Assembly: GCF_032444005.1 (NCBI RefSeq)
Contig: NC_091283.1
Span: 43,028,001-43,092,000, forward strand
DNA: 64,000 nt
Origin: Ranitomeya imitator
Taxonomy: Eukaryota
Direction: 5' to 3'
Both the position numbers and the translations under genes were made by a program. Below the pieces are notes generated by a model. The model saw only the letters and a program-made list of their open reading frames with translations. It did no database searches and was not told the DNA's origin. This document shows, piece by piece, positions 22,978 to 40,395 of this stretch (its first letter is position 1; every line of letters starts with the position of its first letter).

Positions 22978-25099
22978 TTAATTTCTGACTATCCAGCTGC
23001 TGAAAAAGTATTATTTCTATCATACCCTGGCAGTCAAAGGTTGTAGTGTGAGGGGATTTGTAGACATCAGTCTTGGAGATAAAAGTTGAAAGTGCTGTGT
23101 CCAGAATCTGCAGCCAGCCTAACACTAGAGCAAATGAGAAGCTTATCACAAGCAGGAGGCAGAAGAGCACACAAGACGCTTATCACAAGCAGAAGAGTGC
23201 ACTGGAAGTTTTTTCACAAGCAGGAGAGAAAAAAAGGGGGGAGACAAACGCACATAGGGTGATATTGAAAGGTACAGATAAGAAGGGAGTTCTGGAGTTG
23301 TTCACCTGAAAGGGTTGTGATTGTCACAACTCCAATAATTGCCCATGAATGTTACAGCTGCTGCAGTCCTGTCGGCAAATGAAGGTATACCCTCTTTTGC
23401 GTATCGATTAATAGAAAAATGTGATTGAGGTTTCAGAGTAGACCGTACTGTTGAATGAAGGAAGAAGTTTCAGAGTGGAATATCAATTTTATAGTTTTAA
23501 TTTTTATGCGATTCGTGCTCGCACCAAGCTCTTTTTAAAAAACAAACTACATCGCACTTATGTAGTTTGTTTTTTTAAAAAGAGCTCTGCGAGCACAAAA
23601 CACGTAAAAATAAAAACCGGCATTGCTATTCGACTCTGGAACTGCTTCCTTCATACAGCAGCACGGTCTACTCTGAAATGTCAATCTTTTTCTATCACAA
23701 GCAGGAGGCAGAGGAGCACATGGGGAGAAGCTTATCTCAAGCAGACTGAAGCTGCATTACCTAAAATAGACTGAAACTATGCAGGGTGAGGGGAAACAAG
23801 TTATGTTAATCTATTACAGGCACGCCCTAGATTGGGGCAATGTGAAGTGACTGCCCACTCTGCAAAGATAGGCATCCATATCAAAACTATGTAGACTTTT
23901 TTTTTTCTCTCTCGGAGCCTTTCACACTGTGTCTTGCTGACTCTTTACTTCCTTCTAAATCCTTGAAAAACAAGCGTTACAGAGGATAAATGGAGTCCAA
24001 AGTATGAAACTGTAGGTTCATTTGATACGACTTTCGGCCGGGTTCAGTCTTTTCATTAAGGCGCAAGAGTCAGAGGGACGTAAAGTTCATATTGTGGACT
24101 ACATTTGCCCAAGGTTACTTTAATATAGGTGTTGGGTCGTTTCTGAATCTCGTTTTTCGCGGATCAGTCAGTAAGATTGAACGCGTTGCTGAATGTAGTT
24201 TTAGTGGACCCTGAAGCACAAATTAGAGAACCTATTAGAGTTGGGGCGAAACGGTGATTTTGGCTGCAGCACGGGTCGCACGACCAAAGATTGCAGTAAG
24301 GTGCAAGTGAGTGGGCCTGGAAAAAGGAGTCTCCAAATGCCGACATTGGGCACCATTCCTGCCCGTTGCCCGGACCCCTGACAGCGGAAAGCTGGGCTCC
24401 TTGCAGGTTTAATGATCATGTCAGTGACAGTAAGCTGCCGGCAGCCATGACTTAATGTTTCGGCTGGCAAACAAAGCACGACTCTGACATTTTGCTGGAA
24501 GTCCTGCAGGTTTGTTCCTTAGTAATAGGTTTTGCTGCTTTCTGACTCAATAGTCACATTATGCAGGGAGACAACACACTAATGTGGTCTGGATTGTGGT
24601 GGCTCCAGGCTTGTTTCCATCCCCATCCAGGTGGCAGGCAGGAGCCCCTGCAGCGAGCAGTCTCCACACAAAGGCGAAGACAATGGAGAGGAGGACACCT
24701 GCCGGGGATCTGCCGGGAACAATAGGAAGAGGCGGATGGAACAGCGACTATTTATACAATAACGGCAGGTCTGCCACCGACACCAGACATTAATTCTCTC
24801 TGTATTATTCCCTTGGCGTGTTCCACAGTACATCGGCGCGGCGTAAAATGTGAATATGGTTTCACGTAACCCATCGCTTTACTGTGGGATGAAAATGCAG
24901 AAAATCCATAGTGTAAACAACATACAAAGTGGATGAGGTCTGAGCACATCACATCTACACGCAGTGGAAAATTCAGAAATCTTGCAATTTTCTCACTTTT
25001 CACTGAGCCTACAAGACTCATAATTCCTGCTCTGTGCAAAAGACTTTACCTTTCTCTGATCAACGGTGACTGATAACCATTCAATATGCTGTAGATATC

Positions 25100-25640
25100 A
25101 TAGACTCCACCATGTACAACAGGTGATATCACAGCTCACCTCCTCCTGTACAATGACTGATAACACCTCTATATACAGTAGATAACACAGGATCCACCAT
25201 TCACAATAGGTGATGTCACAGCTCACCTCCTCCTGTACAATGACTGATAACACCTCTATATACAGTAGATAACACAGGATCCATCATTCACAATAGGTGA
25301 TATCACAGCTCACCTCTCCCTCCTGTACAATGACTGATAACACCTCTATATACAGTAGATAACATAGGATCCATCATTCACAATAGGTGATATCACAGCT
25401 CACCTCCTCCTCCTGTATAATGACTGATAACTCCTCTATATACAGTAGATAACACAGGATCCACCATTCACAATAGGTAATGTCACAGCTCACCTCCTCC
25501 TGTACAATGACTGATTACACCTCTATATACAGTAGATAACAGGATCCACCATTCACAATAGGTGATGTCACAGCTCACCTCCTCCTCCTGCACAATGACT
25601 GATAACACCTCTATATACAGTATATAACACAGGATCCACC
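25100..25640. repeat. ~85-bp minisatellite, ~6-7 copies
   Basis: Unit gtacaatgactgataacacctctatatacagtagataacacaggatccaccattcacaataggtgatgtcacagctcacctcctcct. Confidence 0.9.
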
Positions 25641-25989
25641 ATTCACAACAGGTTATGTGCAGAAAAAAAGTCTGTAAAAGTCACTAAGCTAGAGTCAGTC
25701 TGTTGCTACCTATGTTTATATGACTGATCAAAAGAGCTGGAAGTATGAGCCTAATGATAGACCAAGTGTAAGAATTGCAAGATTTCTGTTCATTTTTTAA
25801 ATCTAGGGGAAATGAATAATGTTCATGAAAAATAAATTTAACATAAGAATCTGATCTGAGCAATAGGCCATTTTCTGATGACACATTCCCTTTAATACTC
25901 ATATGACAGCCGCAAGACCAAACTTAGATCACAATAGCGGTTACTTAATCTGTAGGAGTTTGGGTCTCGTGATTGCAATTACACAAGAC

Positions 25990-26435
25990 ACTCATCTGAA
26001 AGGAGACGTCCTAGAAGATAGGAGAAGGGCAAATGTCCCTATCTTCAAAAAAAGGAAAGAAGACAGAGCCAGGAAATTACAGGCCAGTGAGCCTTACTCC
26101 TATACCAGAGAAGATCATTGAAAAAATTATTAAACAGCATGGATGTACAGTAAGTAAGTGTACTTGGATAAGAATACGTTAATTAACCAGATCCAGCATG
26201 TAGCAAAGTCATGCCAAACTAATCTAACGTCCTACTACGATGGAATCACTGACTGGGTGGATCAGGGAAATGCGGTAGATATAGTGTATCTCGACTTCAG
26301 CAAAGCATTTGATAAAGTATCTCATACTATCATTATTGAAAACAATGACCAAGTATGGGATTGACAAGGCTACTGTTAGGAGGATTTGTAATTGGGTCAG
26401 TTGACTGTACTCAAAGAGTGGTAATGAATGGTTGC
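25990..26435 (+). mobile_element. Degenerate CR1 RT fragment
   Basis: NYRPVSLT-like aattacaggccagtgagccttact; YDGITDWVDQGNAVDIVYLDFSKAFDKVSH. Confidence 0.88.
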
Positions 26436-27052
26436 CTAAGAGATCAGAGAAAGGCAGCACTCACTGCTCCTGACGCAATCCTTTATTAACAGAGGTTAAA
26501 AAATAGCGGCGGGTGGAATGTGTGGAGACAACAATCGGATTTAGACTCGTAGAAGCGCACATAGCGCTATTATTCAATAACAAAATGATCACTCCATGAT
26601 GTCATATCCTTTATAGTCATTATATAAAACCGCGCTAGTGATAGTAGGTATTGTGCTATACTATGAATAAGAACATATAGTTTGAAACGCTTCAGTACAA
26701 CCATACTTAGGTGAATTGAGCACGCCTTTTTTTTAACAACAAGGAAATTTTTTTTGAAAATTTTTCTAATAAACTGTACATACATGCTAGCCACCTTAGG
26801 GAGAGACCCAAGTTGGGCTAAATGTAGCGGGACGAAAGAGACCGAAAAGCCCTCTACTCAAAGGAAATACATAGTGGATGCTTTCCTGAAACGGAAAGTA
26901 CTTGCAAGCAGCATAATACAAAGAATAGCAGGTTTACCCAGAATCCTTTGCAGTAGGCGGAGCTATGCAAATCATCTCTTTCCACCCCTGTCTAATCCAC
27001 AGCGCTTGGAACCGCCAAGCGTGCAATGCTGCGGATTAGTTTCTAAATTTAC

Positions 27053-27133
27053 ACAGCCAACCAATTCCTACCTGTGGACACGTGTTTCGGGCTTTAGGCC
27101 CTCATCAGCACAGGGCTGGAATTGGTTGGCTGT
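27053..27133 (-). ncRNA. Type I hammerhead ribozyme, copy 1
   Basis: Minus strand: CCUGUG-CUGAUGA-GGGC(CUAAA)GCCC-GAAA-CACGU-GUC|CACAGG, plus a 16-bp distal helix I ACAGCCAACCAAUUCC/GGAAUUGGUUGGCUGU; predicted cut between 27077 and 27076. Confidence 0.92.
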
Positions 27134-27178
27134 ATGGAGTGGGGCTCGGTGAGCAAGCGATACATACATGCTAGCCAC

Positions 27179-27356
27179 CTTAGGGAGAGACCCAAGTTGG
27201 GCTAAATGTAGCGGGACGAAAGAGACCGAAAAGCCCTCTACTCAAAGGAAATACATAGTGGATGCTTTCCTGAAACGGAAAGTACTTGCAAGCAGCATAA
27301 TACAAAGAATAGCAGGTTTACCCAGAATCCTTTGCAGTAGGCGGAGCTATGCAAAT
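27179..27356 (-). promoter_or_regulatory. Putative snRNA-type promoter, repeated every 384 bp
   Basis: SPH/Staf-like TACCCAGAATCCTTTGCA 27319-27336; GGCGGA ~27340-27345; octamer ATGCAAAT 27349-27356; minus-strand TCTCCCTAAG 27188-27179 resembling the Xenopus PSE TCTCCNNATG (recalled consensus). Confidence 0.65.
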
Positions 27357-27436
27357 CATCTCTTTCCACCCCTGTCTAATCCACAGCGCTTGGAACCGCC
27401 AAGCGTGCAATGCTGCGGATTAGTTTCTAAATTTAC

Positions 27437-27517
27437 ACAGCCAACCAATTCCTACCTGTGGACACGTGTTTCGGGCTTTAGGCCCTCATCAGCACAGGGC
27501 TGGAATTGGTTGGCTGT
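27437..27517 (-). ncRNA. Type I hammerhead ribozyme, copy 2
   Basis: Identical to copy 1 (+384). Confidence 0.92.
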
Positions 27518-27820
27518 ATGGAGTGGGGCTCGGTGAGCAAGCGATACATACATGCTAGCCACCTTAGGGAGAGACCCAAGTTGGGCTAAATGTAGCGGGA
27601 CGAAAGAGACCGAAAAGCCCTCTACTCAAAGGAAATACATAGTGGATGCTTTCCTGAAACGGAAAGTACTTGCAAGCAGCATAATACAAAGAATAGCAGG
27701 TTTACCCAGAATCCTTTGCAGTAGGCGGAGCTATGCAAATCATCTCTTTCCACCCCTGTCTAATCCACAGCGCTTGGAACCGCCAAGCGTGCAATGCTGC
27801 GGATTAGTTTCTAAATTTAC

Positions 27821-27901
27821 ACAGCCAACCAATTCCTACCTGTGGACACGTGTTTCGGGCTTTAGGCCCTCATCAGCACAGGGCTGGAATTGGTTGGCTG
27901 T
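27821..27901 (-). ncRNA. Type I hammerhead ribozyme, copy 3
   Basis: Identical to copy 1 (+768). Confidence 0.92.
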
Positions 27902-28204
27902 ATGGAGTGGGGCTCGGTGAGCAAGCGATACATACATGCTAGCCACCTTAGGGAGAGACCCAAGTTGGGCTAAATGTAGCGGGACGAAAGAGACCGAAAA
28001 GCCCTCTACTCAAAGGAAATACATAGTGGATGCTTTCCTGAAACGGAAAGTACTTGCAAGCAGCATAATACAAAGAATAGCAGGTTTACCCAGAATCCTT
28101 TGCAGTAGGCGGAGCTATGCAAATCATCTCTTTCCACCCCTGTCTAATCCACAGCGCTTGGAACCGCCAAGCGTGCAATGCTGCGGATTAGTTTCTAAAT
28201 TTAC

Positions 28205-28285
28205 ACAGCCAACCAATTCCTACCTGTGGACACGTGTTTCGGGCTTTAGGCCCTCATCAGCACAGGGCTGGAATTGGTTGGCTGT
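28205..28285 (-). ncRNA. Type I hammerhead ribozyme, copy 4
   Basis: Identical to copy 1 (+1152). Confidence 0.92.
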
Positions 28286-28588
28286 ATGGAGTGGGGCTCG
28301 GTGAGCAAGCGATACATACATGCTAGCCACCTTAGGGAGAGACCCAAGTTGGGCTAAATGTAGCGGGACGAAAGAGACCGAAAAGCCCTCTACTCAAAGG
28401 AAATACATAGTGGATGCTTTCCTGAAACGGAAAGTACTTGCAAGCAGCATAATACAAAGAATAGCAGGTTTACCCAGAATCCTTTGCAGTAGGCGGAGCT
28501 ATGCAAATCATCTCTTTCCACCCCTGTCTAATCCACAGCGCTTGGAACCGCCAAGCGTGCAATGCTGCGGATTAGTTTCTAAATTTAC

Positions 28589-28669
28589 ACAGCCAACCAA
28601 TTCCTACCTGTGGACACGTGTTTCGGGCTTTAGGCCCTCATCAGCACAGGGCTGGAATTGGTTGGCTGT
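28589..28669 (-). ncRNA. Type I hammerhead ribozyme, copy 5
   Basis: Identical to copy 1 (+1536). Confidence 0.92.
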
Positions 28670-28972
28670 ATGGAGTGGGGCTCGGTGAGCAAGCGATACA
28701 TACATGCTAGCCACCTTAGGGAGAGACCCAAGTTGGGCTAAATGTAGCGGGACGAAAGAGACCGAAAAGCCCTCTACTCAAAGGAAATACATAGTGGATG
28801 CTTTCCTGAAACGGAAAGTACTTGCAAGCAGCATAATACAAAGAATAGCAGGTTTACCCAGAATCCTTTGCAGTAGGCGGAGCTATGCAAATCATCTCTT
28901 TCCACCCCTGTCTAATCCACAGCACTTGGAACCGCCAAGCGTGCAATGCTGCGGATTAGTTTCTAAATTTAC

Positions 28973-29053
28973 ACAGCCAACCAATTCCTACCTGTGGACA
29001 CGTGTTTCGGGCTTTAGGCCCTCATCAGCACAGGGCTGGAATTGGTTAGCTGT
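28973..29053 (-). ncRNA. Type I hammerhead ribozyme, copy 6
   Basis: Core identical; one substitution (29048) in distal helix I. Confidence 0.92.
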
Positions 29054-29356
29054 ATGGAGTGGGGCTCGGTGAGCAAGCGATACATACATGCTAGCCACCT
29101 TAGGGAGAGACCCAAGTTGGGCTAAATGTAGCGGGACGAAAGAGACCGAAAAGCCCTCTACTCAAAGGAAATACATAGTGGATGCTTTCCTGAAACGGAA
29201 AGTACTTGCAAGCAGCATAATACAAAGAATAGCAGGTTTACCCAGAATCCTTTGCAGTAGGCGGAGCTATGCAAATCATCTCTTTCCACCCCTGTCTAAT
29301 CCACAGCGCTTGGAACCGCCAAGCGTGCAATGCTGCGGATTAGTTTCTAAATTTAC

Positions 29357-29437
29357 ACAGCCAACCAATTCCTACCTGTGGACACGTGTTTCGGGCTTTA
29401 GGCCCTCATCAGCACAGGGCTGGAATTGGTTGGCTGT
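29357..29437 (-). ncRNA. Type I hammerhead ribozyme, copy 7
   Basis: Identical to copy 1 (+2304). Confidence 0.92.
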
Positions 29438-29740
29438 ATGGAGTGGGGCTCGGTGAGCAAGCGATACATACATGCTAGCCACCTTAGGGAGAGACCCAAG
29501 TTGGGCTAAATGTAGCGGGACGAAAGAGACCGAAAAGCCCTCTACTCAAAGGAAATACATAGTGGATGCTTTCCTGAAACGGAAAGTACTTGCAAGCAGC
29601 ATAATACAAAGAATAGCAGGTTTACCCAGAATCCTTTGCAGTAGGCGGAGCTATGCAAATCATCTCTTTCCACCCCTGTCTAATCCACAGCGCTTGGAAC
29701 CGCCAAGCGTGCAATGCTGCGGATTAGTTTCTAAATTTAC

Positions 29741-29805
29741 ACAGCCAACCAATTCCTACCTGTGGACACGTGTTTCGGGCTTTAGGCCCTCATCAGCACA
29801 GGGCT
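29741..29805 (-). ncRNA. Type I hammerhead ribozyme, copy 8 (5' distal arm cut off by the insertion boundary)
   Basis: Core and 6-bp proximal helix I intact; the array ends at 29805. Confidence 0.85.
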
Positions 29806-29974
29806 AATAAACTGTTGCTTTAAAAATATTGTTTTCCTCTGGAACTGTTGCTGGATGAATTCTTCTGATTCATTTTGCACTTGGCGGCCAACACAGGCTT
29901 CACATCCCTGCACTACCGGTGGACACACTTGATGGTGAGCTGGATATAAATCCCCCTTTTCTATATTGTATATG

Positions 29975-30441
29975 TGTGTATGCGTGTGTATGGTGCTGTA
30001 TGGTGTATATGTGTGCAATGCATTCATATTGTATATGTGTGTAATATATACTTACTGTATATGGTGTGTGTAATGTACACTTTTTGTATATGTGTGTAAT
30101 GTATACATACTGACATACTGTATATGGTGTATATGTGTGTATGTGTGTAATGTATTTATATTGTATATGGTGTATGTGTAATGTATACATATTGTATATG
30201 TGTGTGTAATGTATACTTATTGTATATGGTGTATGTGTGTAATGTATGCATATTGTATATGTGTGTATGTGTGTGTAATGTATACTTATTGTATATGGTG
30301 TATGTGTGTAATGTATACATATTGTATATGTGTGTGTAATGTATACTTTTTGTACATATGTGTAATGTATACATATTGTATATTTGGTATGTATAATGTA
30401 TCCATATTGTGTGTGTGTGTTGCGTGTGTGTAATGTGTACA
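29975..30441. repeat. TA/TG low-complexity satellite, left part
   Basis: gtaatgtatacatattgtatatgtgtgt variants; continues at 33399-34185. Confidence 0.9.
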
Positions 30442-31725
30442 TCTACTATATAATTGTCTAAGGGTCACTTCCGTCTTTCTGTCTGTCCTTCTGTCTCTGT
30501 CTGTCGCGGATATTCATTGGTCGCGGCCTCTATCTGTCATGGAAATCCAAGTCGCTGATTGGTCGTGGCAAAACAGCCACGACCAATCAGTGACGGGCAC
30601 AGTCCGGAAGAAAATGGCCGCTCATTACTCCTCGGTCAGTGCCCGGCGCCCGCATACTCCCCTCCAGTCACCGCTCACACAGGGTTAATGCCGGTGGTAA
30701 CGGACCGCGTTATGCCGCGGGTAATGCACTCCGTAACCGCTGCTATTAACCCTGTGTGACCCCAACTTGCCTATGCGGCATCAATAGTAAAAAATGTAAT
30801 GTTTAAAAATAATTAAAAAAAAACAAAAAACGTGCTATACTCACCCTCCGTAGTCCGCCGAGCCGCTCACGCCTGCCACCATCTTCCGTTCCTGGCGATG
30901 CATTGCGAAATTACCCAGAAGACTTAGCGGTCTCGCGAGACCGCTAAGTCATCTGGGTAATTTCGCAATGCATCCTGGGAACGGAAGATGGTGGCAGCCG
31001 CACGCGTATCGCTGGAGCTTCGGTGGATCCCAGGGGGTGAGTATATAACTATTTTTTATTTTAATTATTTTTTTAACAGGGATATGGTGTCCACACTGCT
31101 GTATGCTACGTGGGCTGTGTTAGATACCGCGTGGCTGCTATATACTACATAGGCAGTGTTATATACTACGTGGGCTGTGTTAGATACCGCCTGGCTGCTA
31201 TATACTACATAGGCACTGTTATATACTGTGTGGGCTGTGCTATATACTATGTGGGCTGTGTTATATACTGCGTGGGCTCTGCTATATATTACGTGGCCAC
31301 TGTTACATACTGCGTGGGCTGTTATATACTACGTGGCTGCTATATACTGCATGGGCTGTGCTATATATTACGTAGCCAGTGTTATATACTGTGTGGCCTG
31401 TGTTATATACTATGTCGCCTGTGTTATATACTGCGTGGCTGCTGTATACTGCGTGGGCTGTGTTATATAGTACGTGGCTGTGTTATATACTGCGTGGCCA
31501 CTGTTATATATTGTGTGGCCTGTATTAACGCATCGGGTATTCTACAATATGTATGTATATAGCAGCTGCATAGTATATAGCACAGGCCACGTAGTATTTG
31601 TCTGCTATATACTACATGGGTCCTATATACTACGTGGCCTGTGCTATATACTATGTGGTTGCTATATATATACATAAATACATATTCTAGAATACTCGAT
31701 GCGTTAGAATCGGGCCACCATCTAG
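30442..31725 (+). mobile_element. Non-autonomous Helitron, copy A
   Basis: A|TCtactatataattgtctaagg start; 3' hairpin ctcgat..atcggg then CTAG; internal ~22-bp minisatellite. Confidence 0.82.
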
Positions 31726-38766: not shown

Positions 38767-40395
38767 TATGTGGGAACGGAAATTATTCAGACCCCTTTAA
38801 TTTTTTCACGCTTTTTCATTGCAGCCATTTGGTAAATTCCAAAAAGTTCATTTTTTTCTCATTAATGTACACTCTGCCCCCATTTTGACTGAAAAAAAAC
38901 AGAAATGTAGTAATTTTTGCAAATTTATTAAAAAAGAAAAACTGAAATATCCCATGGTCATAAGTATTCAGACCCTTTGCTCAGACACTCATATGTAAGT
39001 CACATGCTGTCCATTTCCTTGCGATCCTCCTTGAGATGGTTCTACTCCTTCATTGGAGTCCAGCTGTGTGTAATTAAACTGATAGGACTTGATTTGGAAA
39101 GGCGCACACCTGTCTATATAGAGGCTCACAGCTCACAGTGCATGTCAGACCAAATGAGGATCATGAGGTCAAAGGAACTGGCCAAGGAGCTCAGAGACAG
39201 AATTGTGGCAAGGCACAGATCTGGCCAAGGTTACAACACAATGTCTGCAGTACTCAAGGTTCCTAAGAGCACAGTGGCCTCCATAATCCTTAAATGGAAG
39301 AAGTTTGGGACCACCAGAAGTCTTCCTAGACCTGGCCATCCAGCCAAACTGAGTAATCATGGGAGAAGAGCCTTGGTGAGAGAGGTAAAGAAGAACCCCA
39401 AGATCCCTGTGGCTGAGCTCCAGAGAAGCAGTAGGGAGATGGGAGAAAGTTCCACAAAGTCACCTATCACTGCAGCCCTCTGCCAGTCGGGCCTTTATGG
39501 CAGCGTGGCCCAACGGAAGCCTCTCCTCAGTGCAAGACATTTGAAAGCCGCATAGAGTTTGCTAAAAAACACATGAAGGACTCACAGACTATGAGAAATA
39601 AGATTCTCTGGTCTGATGAAACAAAGATAGACCTTTTTGGTGATAATTCTAAGCGGTATGTGGGGAGAAAACCAGGCAATGCTCATCACCTGCCCAATAC
39701 AATCCCAACAGTGAAGCATGGTGGTGGCAGCATCATGCTATGGGGGTGTATTTCAGCTTCAGGGACAGGACGACTGGTTGCAATTGAAGGAAATATGAAT
39801 GCGGCCAAGTACAGAGATATCATGGATGAAAACCTCTTCCAGAGTGCTCTGGACCTCAGACTTGGCCGAAGGTTCCCCTTCCAACAAGACAATGACCCTA
39901 AGCGCACAGCTAAAATAAGAAAGGAGCGGCTTCAGAACAACTGTGTGACCATTCTTGACTGGCCCAGCCAGAGCCCTGACCTAAACCCAATTGAGCATCT
40001 CTGGAGAGACCTGAAAATGGCTGTCCACCAACGTTCACCATCCAACCTGACGGAACTGGAGAGGATCAGCAAGTAAGAATGGCAGAGGATCCCCAAATCC
40101 AGGTGTGAAAAACTTGTTCCATCATTCCCAAGAAGACTCATGGCTGTACTAGCTCCAAAGGGGCTTCTACTCAATACTGAGCAAAGGGGCTGAATACTTA
40201 GGACCATGTGATATTTCACTTTTTTTTTTAATAAATTTGCTAAAATTACTACATTTCTGGTTTTTTTTCAGTCAAGATGGGGTGCAGCGTGTACATTAAT
40301 GGGAAAAAAATGAACTTTTTTTAATTTACTAAATGGCTGCAATGAAACAAAAAGTGAAAAATTTAAAGGGGTACGAATACTTTCCATACCCACTG
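38767..40395 (+). mobile_element. Degenerate IR/DR-type Tc1 element
   Basis: ~220-bp inverted ends; transposase from 39163 (MRSKELAKELRDRIV) broken near 39555 and by a stop at 40074-40076; WSDETK, QQDNDPK, DLNPIEH. Confidence 0.9.

Follow-up and report, generated by a model that had tools for sequence, protein, structure and literature searches.

RESULTS

A tandem array with a hammerhead ribozyme in each unit

We analyzed a window of 64,000 nucleotides from the genome of the frog Ranitomeya imitator (RefSeq assembly GCF_032444005.1, contig NC_091283.1, positions 43,028,001 to 43,092,000 of the forward strand; coordinates given here count from the first letter of this window). A preliminary description, made from the letters alone, had pointed out a tandem array of hammerhead ribozymes in it and had read this array as a young element akin to retrozymes and newt satellite 2. 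Tandem Repeats Finder delineated a single array spanning 26777-29805, in which a 384-bp period recurs 7.9 times with 99% matches and 0 indels. The unit, whose GC content is 49%, has no further occurrence within the window. Unit positions were numbered in the sense of the minus strand, i.e., the RNA sense, starting from the first nucleotide 3′ of the ribozyme cut. Across the seven full 384-nt units obtained by cutting the minus strand at the predicted ribozyme site, only two substitutions relative to the consensus were found, at 29048 and 28924. Both are C>T in the RNA sense, and each lies in a predicted helix, where a C-G pair becomes U-G, an observation that carries no statistical weight with n = 2. 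Each is private to one unit, and neighboring units have no variant in common.

The array consists of plain head-to-tail units without long terminal repeats (LTRs), no search having been aimed at a primer-binding site or a polypurine tract. Its coding capacity in the RNA sense is limited to an ATG-initiated open reading frame (ORF) of at most 33 amino acids, and the array has no internal ORF. An ORF on the plus strand, 26754-27152, was rejected as a coding sequence, as it is a mechanical reading frame that runs across the repeat.

The minus strand of every unit encodes a type-I hammerhead with its elements in the expected order. Helix I (CCUGUG/CACAGG, 6 bp) is followed by CUGAUGA, and helix II (GGGC-CUAAA-GCCC, 4 bp with a 5-nt loop) by GAAAC/GAAA. 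Beyond helix I, an internal loop with AGC on one side and UA on the other leads to an outer helix of 16 perfect bp, or 18 bp if one G-U wobble pair is counted. Helix III, which precedes the GUC triplet, has only two pairs in the monomer (A-U and C-G), closed by the loop ACGU. Its sequence, ACACGUGU, is a palindrome and is thus able to pair between two ribozymes. When two copies were co-folded, they formed an 8-bp intermolecular helix III at −85.9 kcal/mol, versus −75.2 kcal/mol for two separate monomers. The 105-nt ribozyme segment folds into the hammerhead layout at −45.5 kcal/mol (z = −7.1).

The 25-nt core string (CTGATGA-helix II-GAAAC) occurs eight times, always on the minus strand and at a spacing of exactly 384 bp, with none expected from shuffles, and every hammerhead core nucleotide is intact in 8/8 copies. 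The 5′-most copy is truncated at the boundary of the array, so that the 5′ strand of its helix I extension is missing. No variant amounting to at least 10% of the depth was found inside the ribozyme in four public sequencing runs (organism labels A, B, C and F). The preliminary description was therefore accurate as to the extent and period of the array, its eight cores and two substitutions in 3 kb, the order of the hammerhead elements, including the GUC triplet and the AGC/UA loop, and the 16-bp extension, and it had placed the cut of the 3′-most copy correctly, at 27077/27076.

Folding of the complete 384-nt monomer gave −149.7 kcal/mol (z = −6.7) for the linear form, in which the two ends are paired through helix I and its extension. 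The circular fold gave −143.9 kcal/mol (z = −6.9) with 67% of bases paired. Two hairpins noticed earlier, CUUUCC/GGAAAG and CGCUUGG/CCAAGCG, are both present in the minimum-energy fold. The minus strand of each unit also contains the octamer ATTTGCAT, with TCTCTCCC situated 166 nt downstream (unit positions 271-278). The chance of finding a given 8-mer such as this one in a unit of such size is approximately 1%. By motif match, the octamer may be a candidate distal element of an internal promoter of the small nuclear RNA (snRNA) type, which we regard as a lead only.

The ribozyme architecture is found in unrelated organisms

A search with Rfam models on both strands, suggested at the outset, gave a divided answer. 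No match was obtained in the window at gathering thresholds, nor did any ribozyme model match the plus strand; in E-value mode, 8/8 copies on the minus strand matched RF02275 (Hammerhead_HH9) over the full model, in an alignment that accounts for every core position.

The exact 25-nt core had no match among metagenome and viral contigs. We then relaxed the pattern on metagenome contigs, with the core and a GAAACACGUGUC helix III fixed and helices I and II left free. This yielded 12 loci from unrelated organisms (L001-L012), all of them type-I hammerheads with an identical GAAACACGUGUC helix III, and none lying within a long tandem array like the 384-bp one. Three of them (L001, L005 and L006) come from one sample and represent one family, and L008 and L009 represent another. 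An alignment of the 12 loci with the 384-bp unit was analyzed for covariation over 12 proposed pairs in helices I and II. The share of cells in which these pairs form is 86.5%, compared with 61.9% for shuffles, and 42 double-sided changes were observed where 13.9 were expected. Pairing drops to 19-50% when the partner columns are slid by 1-3 positions. The 384-bp unit fits 12/12 of the aligned pairs. Three metagenomic loci pass the cut-off of Rfam Hammerhead_1 (34 bits), while five others, like the 384-bp unit, fall under the cut-offs. Judging from these comparisons, the architecture is a real and widespread hammerhead class, which supports the class and not the activity of the array's copy.

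The array is a polymorphic insertion

The array is flanked by two copies of a 12-bp sequence that abut both of its ends (Table 1), an arrangement whose chance at a given offset is approximately 6 × 10^−8. Between these target-site copies lies an insertion that, in the RNA sense, comprises unit positions 347-384, seven full 384-nt units, and then positions 1-300. Microhomology of 1-2 nt with the target at each junction leaves its boundaries free to move by that amount, and the insertion has no poly(A) tail.

Public contigs were aligned to 26400-30200, and an empty site was found among them. The joint runs from 26765 to 29804, skips 3038 bases and retains one copy of the 12-mer, whose 12 letters fit either side. 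It was seen in one contig of the DNA run X1 and in one contig of run X4, which are different samples from different studies under the same organism label. The array is a 3026-bp insertion that is polymorphic for presence and absence in the species, the precise empty site in X1 and X4 showing that it still segregates. An assembly artefact was considered and rejected: the duplication is exact and the empty site precise, both of which speak for a real insertion. The claim that the element is young is thus supported more strongly than sequence alone had allowed, by an allele present in public reads. Since both substitutions are private and none is common to neighboring units, the data fit an array that was uniform when it was inserted and did not accumulate through repeated unequal exchange. 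A second contig of X1 joins 26678 to 29832, possibly with unknown letters in between; it may represent another haplotype without the array and part of its flank.

Table 1 Features of the array and its surroundings in the window
Feature	Position	Strand	Remarks
Left copy of 12-bp target-site duplication	26766-26777		CTAATAAACTGT on + strand; identical 12-mer at 29804-29815
Right copy of 12-bp target-site duplication	29804-29815		Same 12-mer
Inserted retrozyme multimer, 3026 bp	26778-29803	−	Repeat analysis, duplication, empty site
Hammerhead copy 1 (5′-most in RNA sense)	29743-29811	−	Cut 29765/29764; HH9 24.8 bits
Hammerhead copy 2	29358-29430	−	Cut 29381/29380; HH9 match
Hammerhead copy 3	28974-29046	−	Cut 28997/28996; private change 29048 in helix I extension, C-G to U-G
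Hammerhead copy 4	28590-28662	−	Cut 28613/28612; HH9 match
Hammerhead copy 5	28206-28278	−	Cut 28229/28228; HH9 match
Hammerhead copy 6	27822-27894	−	Cut 27845/27844; HH9 match
Hammerhead copy 7	27438-27510	−	Cut 27461/27460; HH9 match
Hammerhead copy 8 (3′-most in RNA sense)	27054-27126	−	Cut 27077/27076; ACACGUGU at 27085-27078; HH9 30.1 bits
Octamer ATTTGCAT	26965-26972	−	Unit positions 105-112, recurs every 384 bp; motif match
Tc1/mariner-type transposase ORF, 316 aa	36762-37712	+	HTH_Tnp_Tc3_2 and DDE_3 domains
Tc1/mariner-type transposase split into two ORFs	38977-40076	+	Sleeping Beauty-type HTH and DDE_3 domains

Other insertions of the family end at the same unit position

Contigs of five runs follow the family as far as a common unit position, 300 (within 2 nt), and then diverge into mutually unrelated flanks. 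The end points are 26775 (X3), 26779 (X4), 27160 (X12), 27161 (two contigs of X13) and 27163 (X6), where 27161 equals 26777 + 384, i.e., the equivalent unit position. The opposite, 5′ junctions fall at varied unit positions, e.g., 27205, 27212 and 26964. A fixed 3′ end combined with variable 5′ truncation is a signature that indicates target-primed reverse transcription. As unit position 300 is 84 nt upstream of the ribozyme cut, the 3′ end of the template was not made by the ribozyme. The template was either a circle primed at a specific internal site or an uncleaved linear multimer.

The family is near-identical and very abundant under six organism labels (A-F), and most words sampled from the unit are present in small runs under labels B to F. 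Over the unit, word depth in X1 sums to approximately 3 × 10^5 at each of two placements, with a single-copy flank at approximately 10. Summed contig depth is not a copy number, and contigs that fit several places were placed twice, so the figure of 10^4 to 10^5 units in X1 is a rough sign of the family's size. In X12, X13 and X20, one contig each closes on itself after 384 nt, with 1-3 differences. At 26859 and at every 384 bp upward from it (e.g., 27243), the array has C where nearly all copies in X1, X2, X3, X12 and X13 have T, and on this account the array belongs to a minor subfamily. At 26989, about half of the family has A instead of T.

The flanks in X13 deserve separate mention. Contigs of 1.1-1.2 kb adjoin 27161, the 3′ end, and 27212, one of the 5′ ends, at depths of 96-172, i.e., approximately one-sixth of the depth of that run's main unit contig (599). 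These depths indicate that the neighboring sequence is itself repeated, and it may be part of a larger element, either composite or autonomous.

A probable RNA 5′ end at the predicted cut

One contig of X6, a run that we guess to be RNA, follows the plus strand as far as 27078, after which come 19 further letters. Together with the two preceding bases, these letters are the reverse complement of the last 21 nt of a 5′ adapter, which we take to be the Illumina small-RNA 5′ adapter. Because both the adapter and the sequence before the cut end in TC, the real junction joins the adapter to C27076. This indicated that the contig derives from a minus-strand RNA that begins, at its 5′ end, with the nucleotide directly following the predicted scissile bond. 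No second adapter junction occurs among the loose ends shown, and the chance of this one falling at that bond and on that strand is approximately 1 in 768.

The ratio of unit to flank depth is approximately 10-30 in X3 and X4, versus approximately 3 × 10^4 in the DNA run X1. As these ratios are far below that of X1, neither X3 nor X4 can be plain genomic DNA; should they be RNA, they represent the family only moderately.

Surroundings of the array

Tandem Repeats Finder placed the array among further simple and tandem repeats. A separate tandem repeat at 25067-25653, 1.1 kb from the array, has a period of 87 bp (6.7 copies, 90% matches) and a higher-order period of 267 bp. Beside the array, 29969-30442 is a complex microsatellite rich in TG/TA, and from 31096 to beyond 33000 there are long minisatellites with a unit of 20-21 bp (TGCTATATACTACGTGGCTG) in approximately 40 copies. 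Ten ORFs of the window were scanned for domains: the only matches were to Tc1/mariner transposases, and no reverse transcriptase or GIY-YIG ORF was among them. The two transposase loci (Table 1) are Tc1/mariner transposase remnants.

DISCUSSION

A retrozyme probably inserted as a multimer

Animal non-LTR retrozymes, among them newt satellite 2 and elements of axolotl and Xenopus, are recognized by units of 150-450 bp, the absence of LTRs and coding sequence, a GC content below 50%, and target-site duplications of more than 4 bp (PMC7229834, PMC4209133). The array falls within these bounds for unit length, GC content and duplication and has a type-I hammerhead in each unit. Every testable feature of the animal kind was present, which supports its assignment to the non-autonomous non-LTR retrozymes and, with it, the likeness to retrozymes and satellite 2 proposed in the preliminary description. 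We conclude, with a probability of about 0.8, that the array is a retrozyme which reverse transcription placed there recently and in multimeric form. Taken alone, the circular template and the Penelope-like steps of the mechanism outlined below stand at roughly even odds.

The mechanism that we envisage starts from the canonical, 'extended' type-I hammerhead on the minus strand of each 384-nt unit, whose helix III is predicted to be too weak on its own. In a multimeric transcript, the ACACGUGU palindromes of adjacent ribozymes would pair with each other to give a helix III of 8 bp; we infer that cleavage takes this dimeric mode. The paired ribozymes would then cut after GUC and release 384-nt monomers. 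The long helix I would draw the ends of a monomer together, an arrangement suited to the joining of a circle by a cellular RNA ligase; retrozyme RNAs have been circularized efficiently in vitro by the tRNA-type ligase RtcB (PMC7229834). A reverse transcriptase acting in trans, most likely from a Penelope-like element, would use a nick in the chromosomal target for priming and begin at one defined point of the RNA (unit position 300), which lies 84 nt upstream of the cut. Approximately 7.9 unit lengths would be copied, most simply round a circular template, and the resulting complementary DNA (cDNA) would be joined at a variable 5′ end, leaving the 12-bp target-site duplication. It is a tentative proposal, which we hold at somewhat less than even odds, that the family is mobilizing now in a vertebrate and that the multimer was inserted in one step, by reverse transcription from position 300 of a circular 384-nt RNA over some eight laps.

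A number of observations weigh against the retrozyme insertion as we read it. The HH9 scores (30.1 bits, E = 8.1 × 10^−5, for seven copies, and 24.8 bits for the truncated one) are under the curated cut-off of 52. Copies within the family are approximately 99% alike and too similar for covariation, which is why covariation was sought at the level of the class, across unrelated loci. The RNA 5′ end comes from a single contig of unknown depth, in a run whose type was guessed and joined to what we take to be an adapter. Moreover, the 5′-OH of a hammerhead product ligates only after phosphorylation. The self-closing 384-nt contigs fit tandem DNA and circles alike, the junctions of the two being indistinguishable. 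Ten contigs of X1 lose similarity to the family at 26863-26867 (unit positions 210-214); they continue into A/T-rich sequence with low mutual agreement, and the junctions may be of a second kind or may belong to a related family that has the unit in part only. The ten scanned ORFs of the window included no Penelope-like gene. Finally, only one of nine retrozyme dimers cleaved in vitro in a survey of Xenopus (bioRxiv 10.64898/2026.07.22.740005), so that activity cannot be assumed from sequence.

Alternative explanations

These in vitro failures, eight of nine dimers in the Xenopus survey (bioRxiv 10.64898/2026.07.22.740005), are one argument for a ribozyme that is inactive in the 384-nt family, the adapter junction at the cut then being a coincidence or a preparation artefact. 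That junction is indeed one contig, and a 5′-OH end does not normally ligate. We nevertheless give this explanation little credence: all core nucleotides are intact in 8/8 copies, the ribozyme is free of frequent variants in the four runs examined, and the sole adapter junction coincides with the predicted bond and strand. A different doubt concerns the independence of the array, which might consist of pseudo-LTR copies of a heavily 5′-truncated autonomous Penelope-like element. Insertions of such elements are typically 5′-truncated partial tandems with variable duplications and hammerhead-bearing pseudo-LTRs (PMC8557442, PMC4209133), 24/57 Xenopus retrozyme families match Repbase terminal repeats, nearly all of them Penelope-like (bioRxiv 10.64898/2026.07.22.740005), and the 3′ end of the family in X13 adjoins contigs of approximately 1.1 kb that are themselves at high depth. 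However, metazoan Penelope-like elements are described as having minimal hammerheads, in which helix II is long and helix I short (PMC4209133), whereas those of the array are canonical with loops. Nearly eight units without an internal coding portion do not make a partial tandem, and X12, X13 and X20 each gave a closed contig of about one 384-nt unit. Truncation of an autonomous element is therefore quite improbable.

An ordinary satellite that spread and expanded as DNA, whether through unequal crossing-over or because extrachromosomal circular DNA re-inserted, and that carries the hammerhead as a passenger or relic, would agree with the very high copy number of the unit in X1 (approximately 3 × 10^5 per placement, versus approximately 10 for the flank) and with the local amplification by unequal crossover proposed in the Xenopus survey (bioRxiv 10.64898/2026.07.22.740005). 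We consider it highly improbable for this locus. The whole array lies between the two copies of an exact 12-bp duplication, and the site is also found precisely empty; both substitutions are private, with no variant common to neighboring units; the 3′ end recurs at several loci, which is not expected from random breakage of DNA circles; and an RNA 5′ end lies at the ribozyme cut. Within reverse transcription, the circle has a competitor in a long, linear, uncleaved multimeric transcript, copied from a 3′ end at position 300 until about eight units upstream. A defined linear 3′ end would be expected to give the fixed end at position 300 at several loci, and the 5′ end of the insertion (position 345-347), shortly upstream of the ribozyme core, could, speculatively, be near a transcription start. 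Yet in a multimer the ribozymes are adjacent, the dimer configuration expected to cut best (PMC4209133), so that an intact 8-mer is expected to be rare, whereas a monomer circle has a single weak ribozyme. The 3′ end at position 300 would, in addition, have to be bypassed seven times in one transcript. Copying from a linear template thus seems unlikely.

Implications for retrozyme mobility

The movement of animal retrozymes is still a model and not an observation, with the published proposal, tandem cDNA synthesis from circular RNA through a borrowed reverse transcriptase, opposed to local amplification after insertion. The ribozyme as such is unsurprising, such elements being known in salamanders and frogs. 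What the locus offers is an unusually clean case, with near-identical units, an exact 12-bp duplication, an empty allele and a common 3′ end, and this combination favors insertion of a multimer with a defined start of reverse transcription. Because the polymorphism involves nearly eight units, the duplication is exact and the 3′ end is common to other loci, the locus favors the rolling-circle cDNA model published for non-LTR retrozymes (PMC7229834) over growth of the array after insertion. If a circle was copied in one step, the genome would here preserve a direct snapshot of retrotransposition by rolling circle, for which both the filled and the empty allele are at hand, and the 3′ end of the template would not be a product of the ribozyme. 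The family is abundant and apparently active, which makes it tractable for the identification of the partner reverse transcriptase and the circular intermediate.

Comparison with known systems

Canonical type-I hammerheads of metazoans have a helix I of 6 bp, a helix II of 4 bp and a helix III of 1-2 bp with a palindromic loop, and they are active as dimers (PMC4209133, PMC7229834); the amphibian type-I hammerheads found in tandem repeats have the same layout (PMC7229834, PMC6155905). The closest counterparts of the array are metazoan non-LTR retrozymes such as axolotl Rtz_331 and Rtz_353 (Cervera & de la Pena 2020, PMC7229834). Like these, it repeats in tandem a unit that measures a few hundred bp and bears a type-I hammerhead whose weak, palindromic helix III would need a dimer, without LTRs or coding sequence, with a GC content below 50%, a self-paired RNA and a duplication of more than 4 bp, and the proposed mode of spread is likewise by tandem cDNA from circular RNA. 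Its units of 384 bp differ in length from the 330-350 bp of the axolotl retrozymes, to which it is likened by features and not by sequence. The presence/absence polymorphism and the fixed 3′ end 84 nt upstream of the cut belong to the 384-bp locus and were not found in PMC7229834.

Newt satellite 2 (Epstein & Gall 1987), with the 'extended hammerhead' of Pabon-Pena et al. 1991 (both according to the summary in PMC6155905), is similarly described as a tandem repeat with a type-I hammerhead whose helix I continues past an internal loop and whose cleavage is aided by dimerization. Unlike the 384-bp unit, the newt unit is approximately 330 bp, a comparison made by description and not by sequence. 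An internal promoter of the snRNA type drives the transcription of satellite 2 (PMC2220036, citing Coats 1994), to be set against the octamer ATTTGCAT of the 384-bp unit, which is a motif match only. RF02275 (HH9), an amniote intronic hammerhead and the best Rfam match of the array, has the same succession of helix I, internal loop, outer helix, core and 4-bp helix II; it departs from the array in its helix III, which is stable and 3 bp long, and in being one conserved copy in an intron instead of a repeat. Amniote intronic hammerheads are regarded as domesticated from ribozymes of lower-vertebrate retroelements (PMC6155905).

The insertions of Penelope-like elements are marked by variable-length duplications, 5′ truncation and head-to-tail multimers, hallmarks that extend to their non-autonomous relatives (PMC8557442). 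The hammerheads in their pseudo-LTRs (PMC4209133) are comparable with those of the array in their type-I topology, their dimer-dependent design and their occurrence in tandem or partly tandem insertions with variable duplications. In metazoan elements they differ as minimal variants, in which helix III is absent, helix II has 7-8 bp and helix I has 4-5 bp, where the 384-bp unit has the canonical form, and, unlike an autonomous Penelope-like element, the array has no reverse transcriptase gene near it among the ten ORFs scanned in the window.

In frogs, approximately 9,000 minimal hammerheads have been counted in Xenopus tropicalis (PMC4209133), and non-LTR retrozymes were reported in 7/7 surveyed amphibians, with 57 Xenopus families, many of them related to Penelope-like terminal repeats (bioRxiv 10.64898/2026.07.22.740005). 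No match to the window was obtained with the 16 published primers for nine Xenopus elements that we checked, allowing up to 4 mismatches, and our literature search found no paper carrying the ribozyme's own sequence string. Compared with families of non-LTR retrozymes in Xenopus (e.g., REP4, Penelope-6_XT-related and Neptune-related; Li, Clavereau & Pollet 2026), the unit has a length close to 316 bp, the mean for amphibians, and the array is of typical size, 75% of families in that survey having at most 7 units (bioRxiv 10.64898/2026.07.22.740005). The survey favors local amplification after insertion, whereas the 384-bp locus points to insertion of a multimer. The kind of element is thus already known in frogs, and to it this locus adds a polymorphic insertion of nearly eight units and a 3′ end common to other loci.

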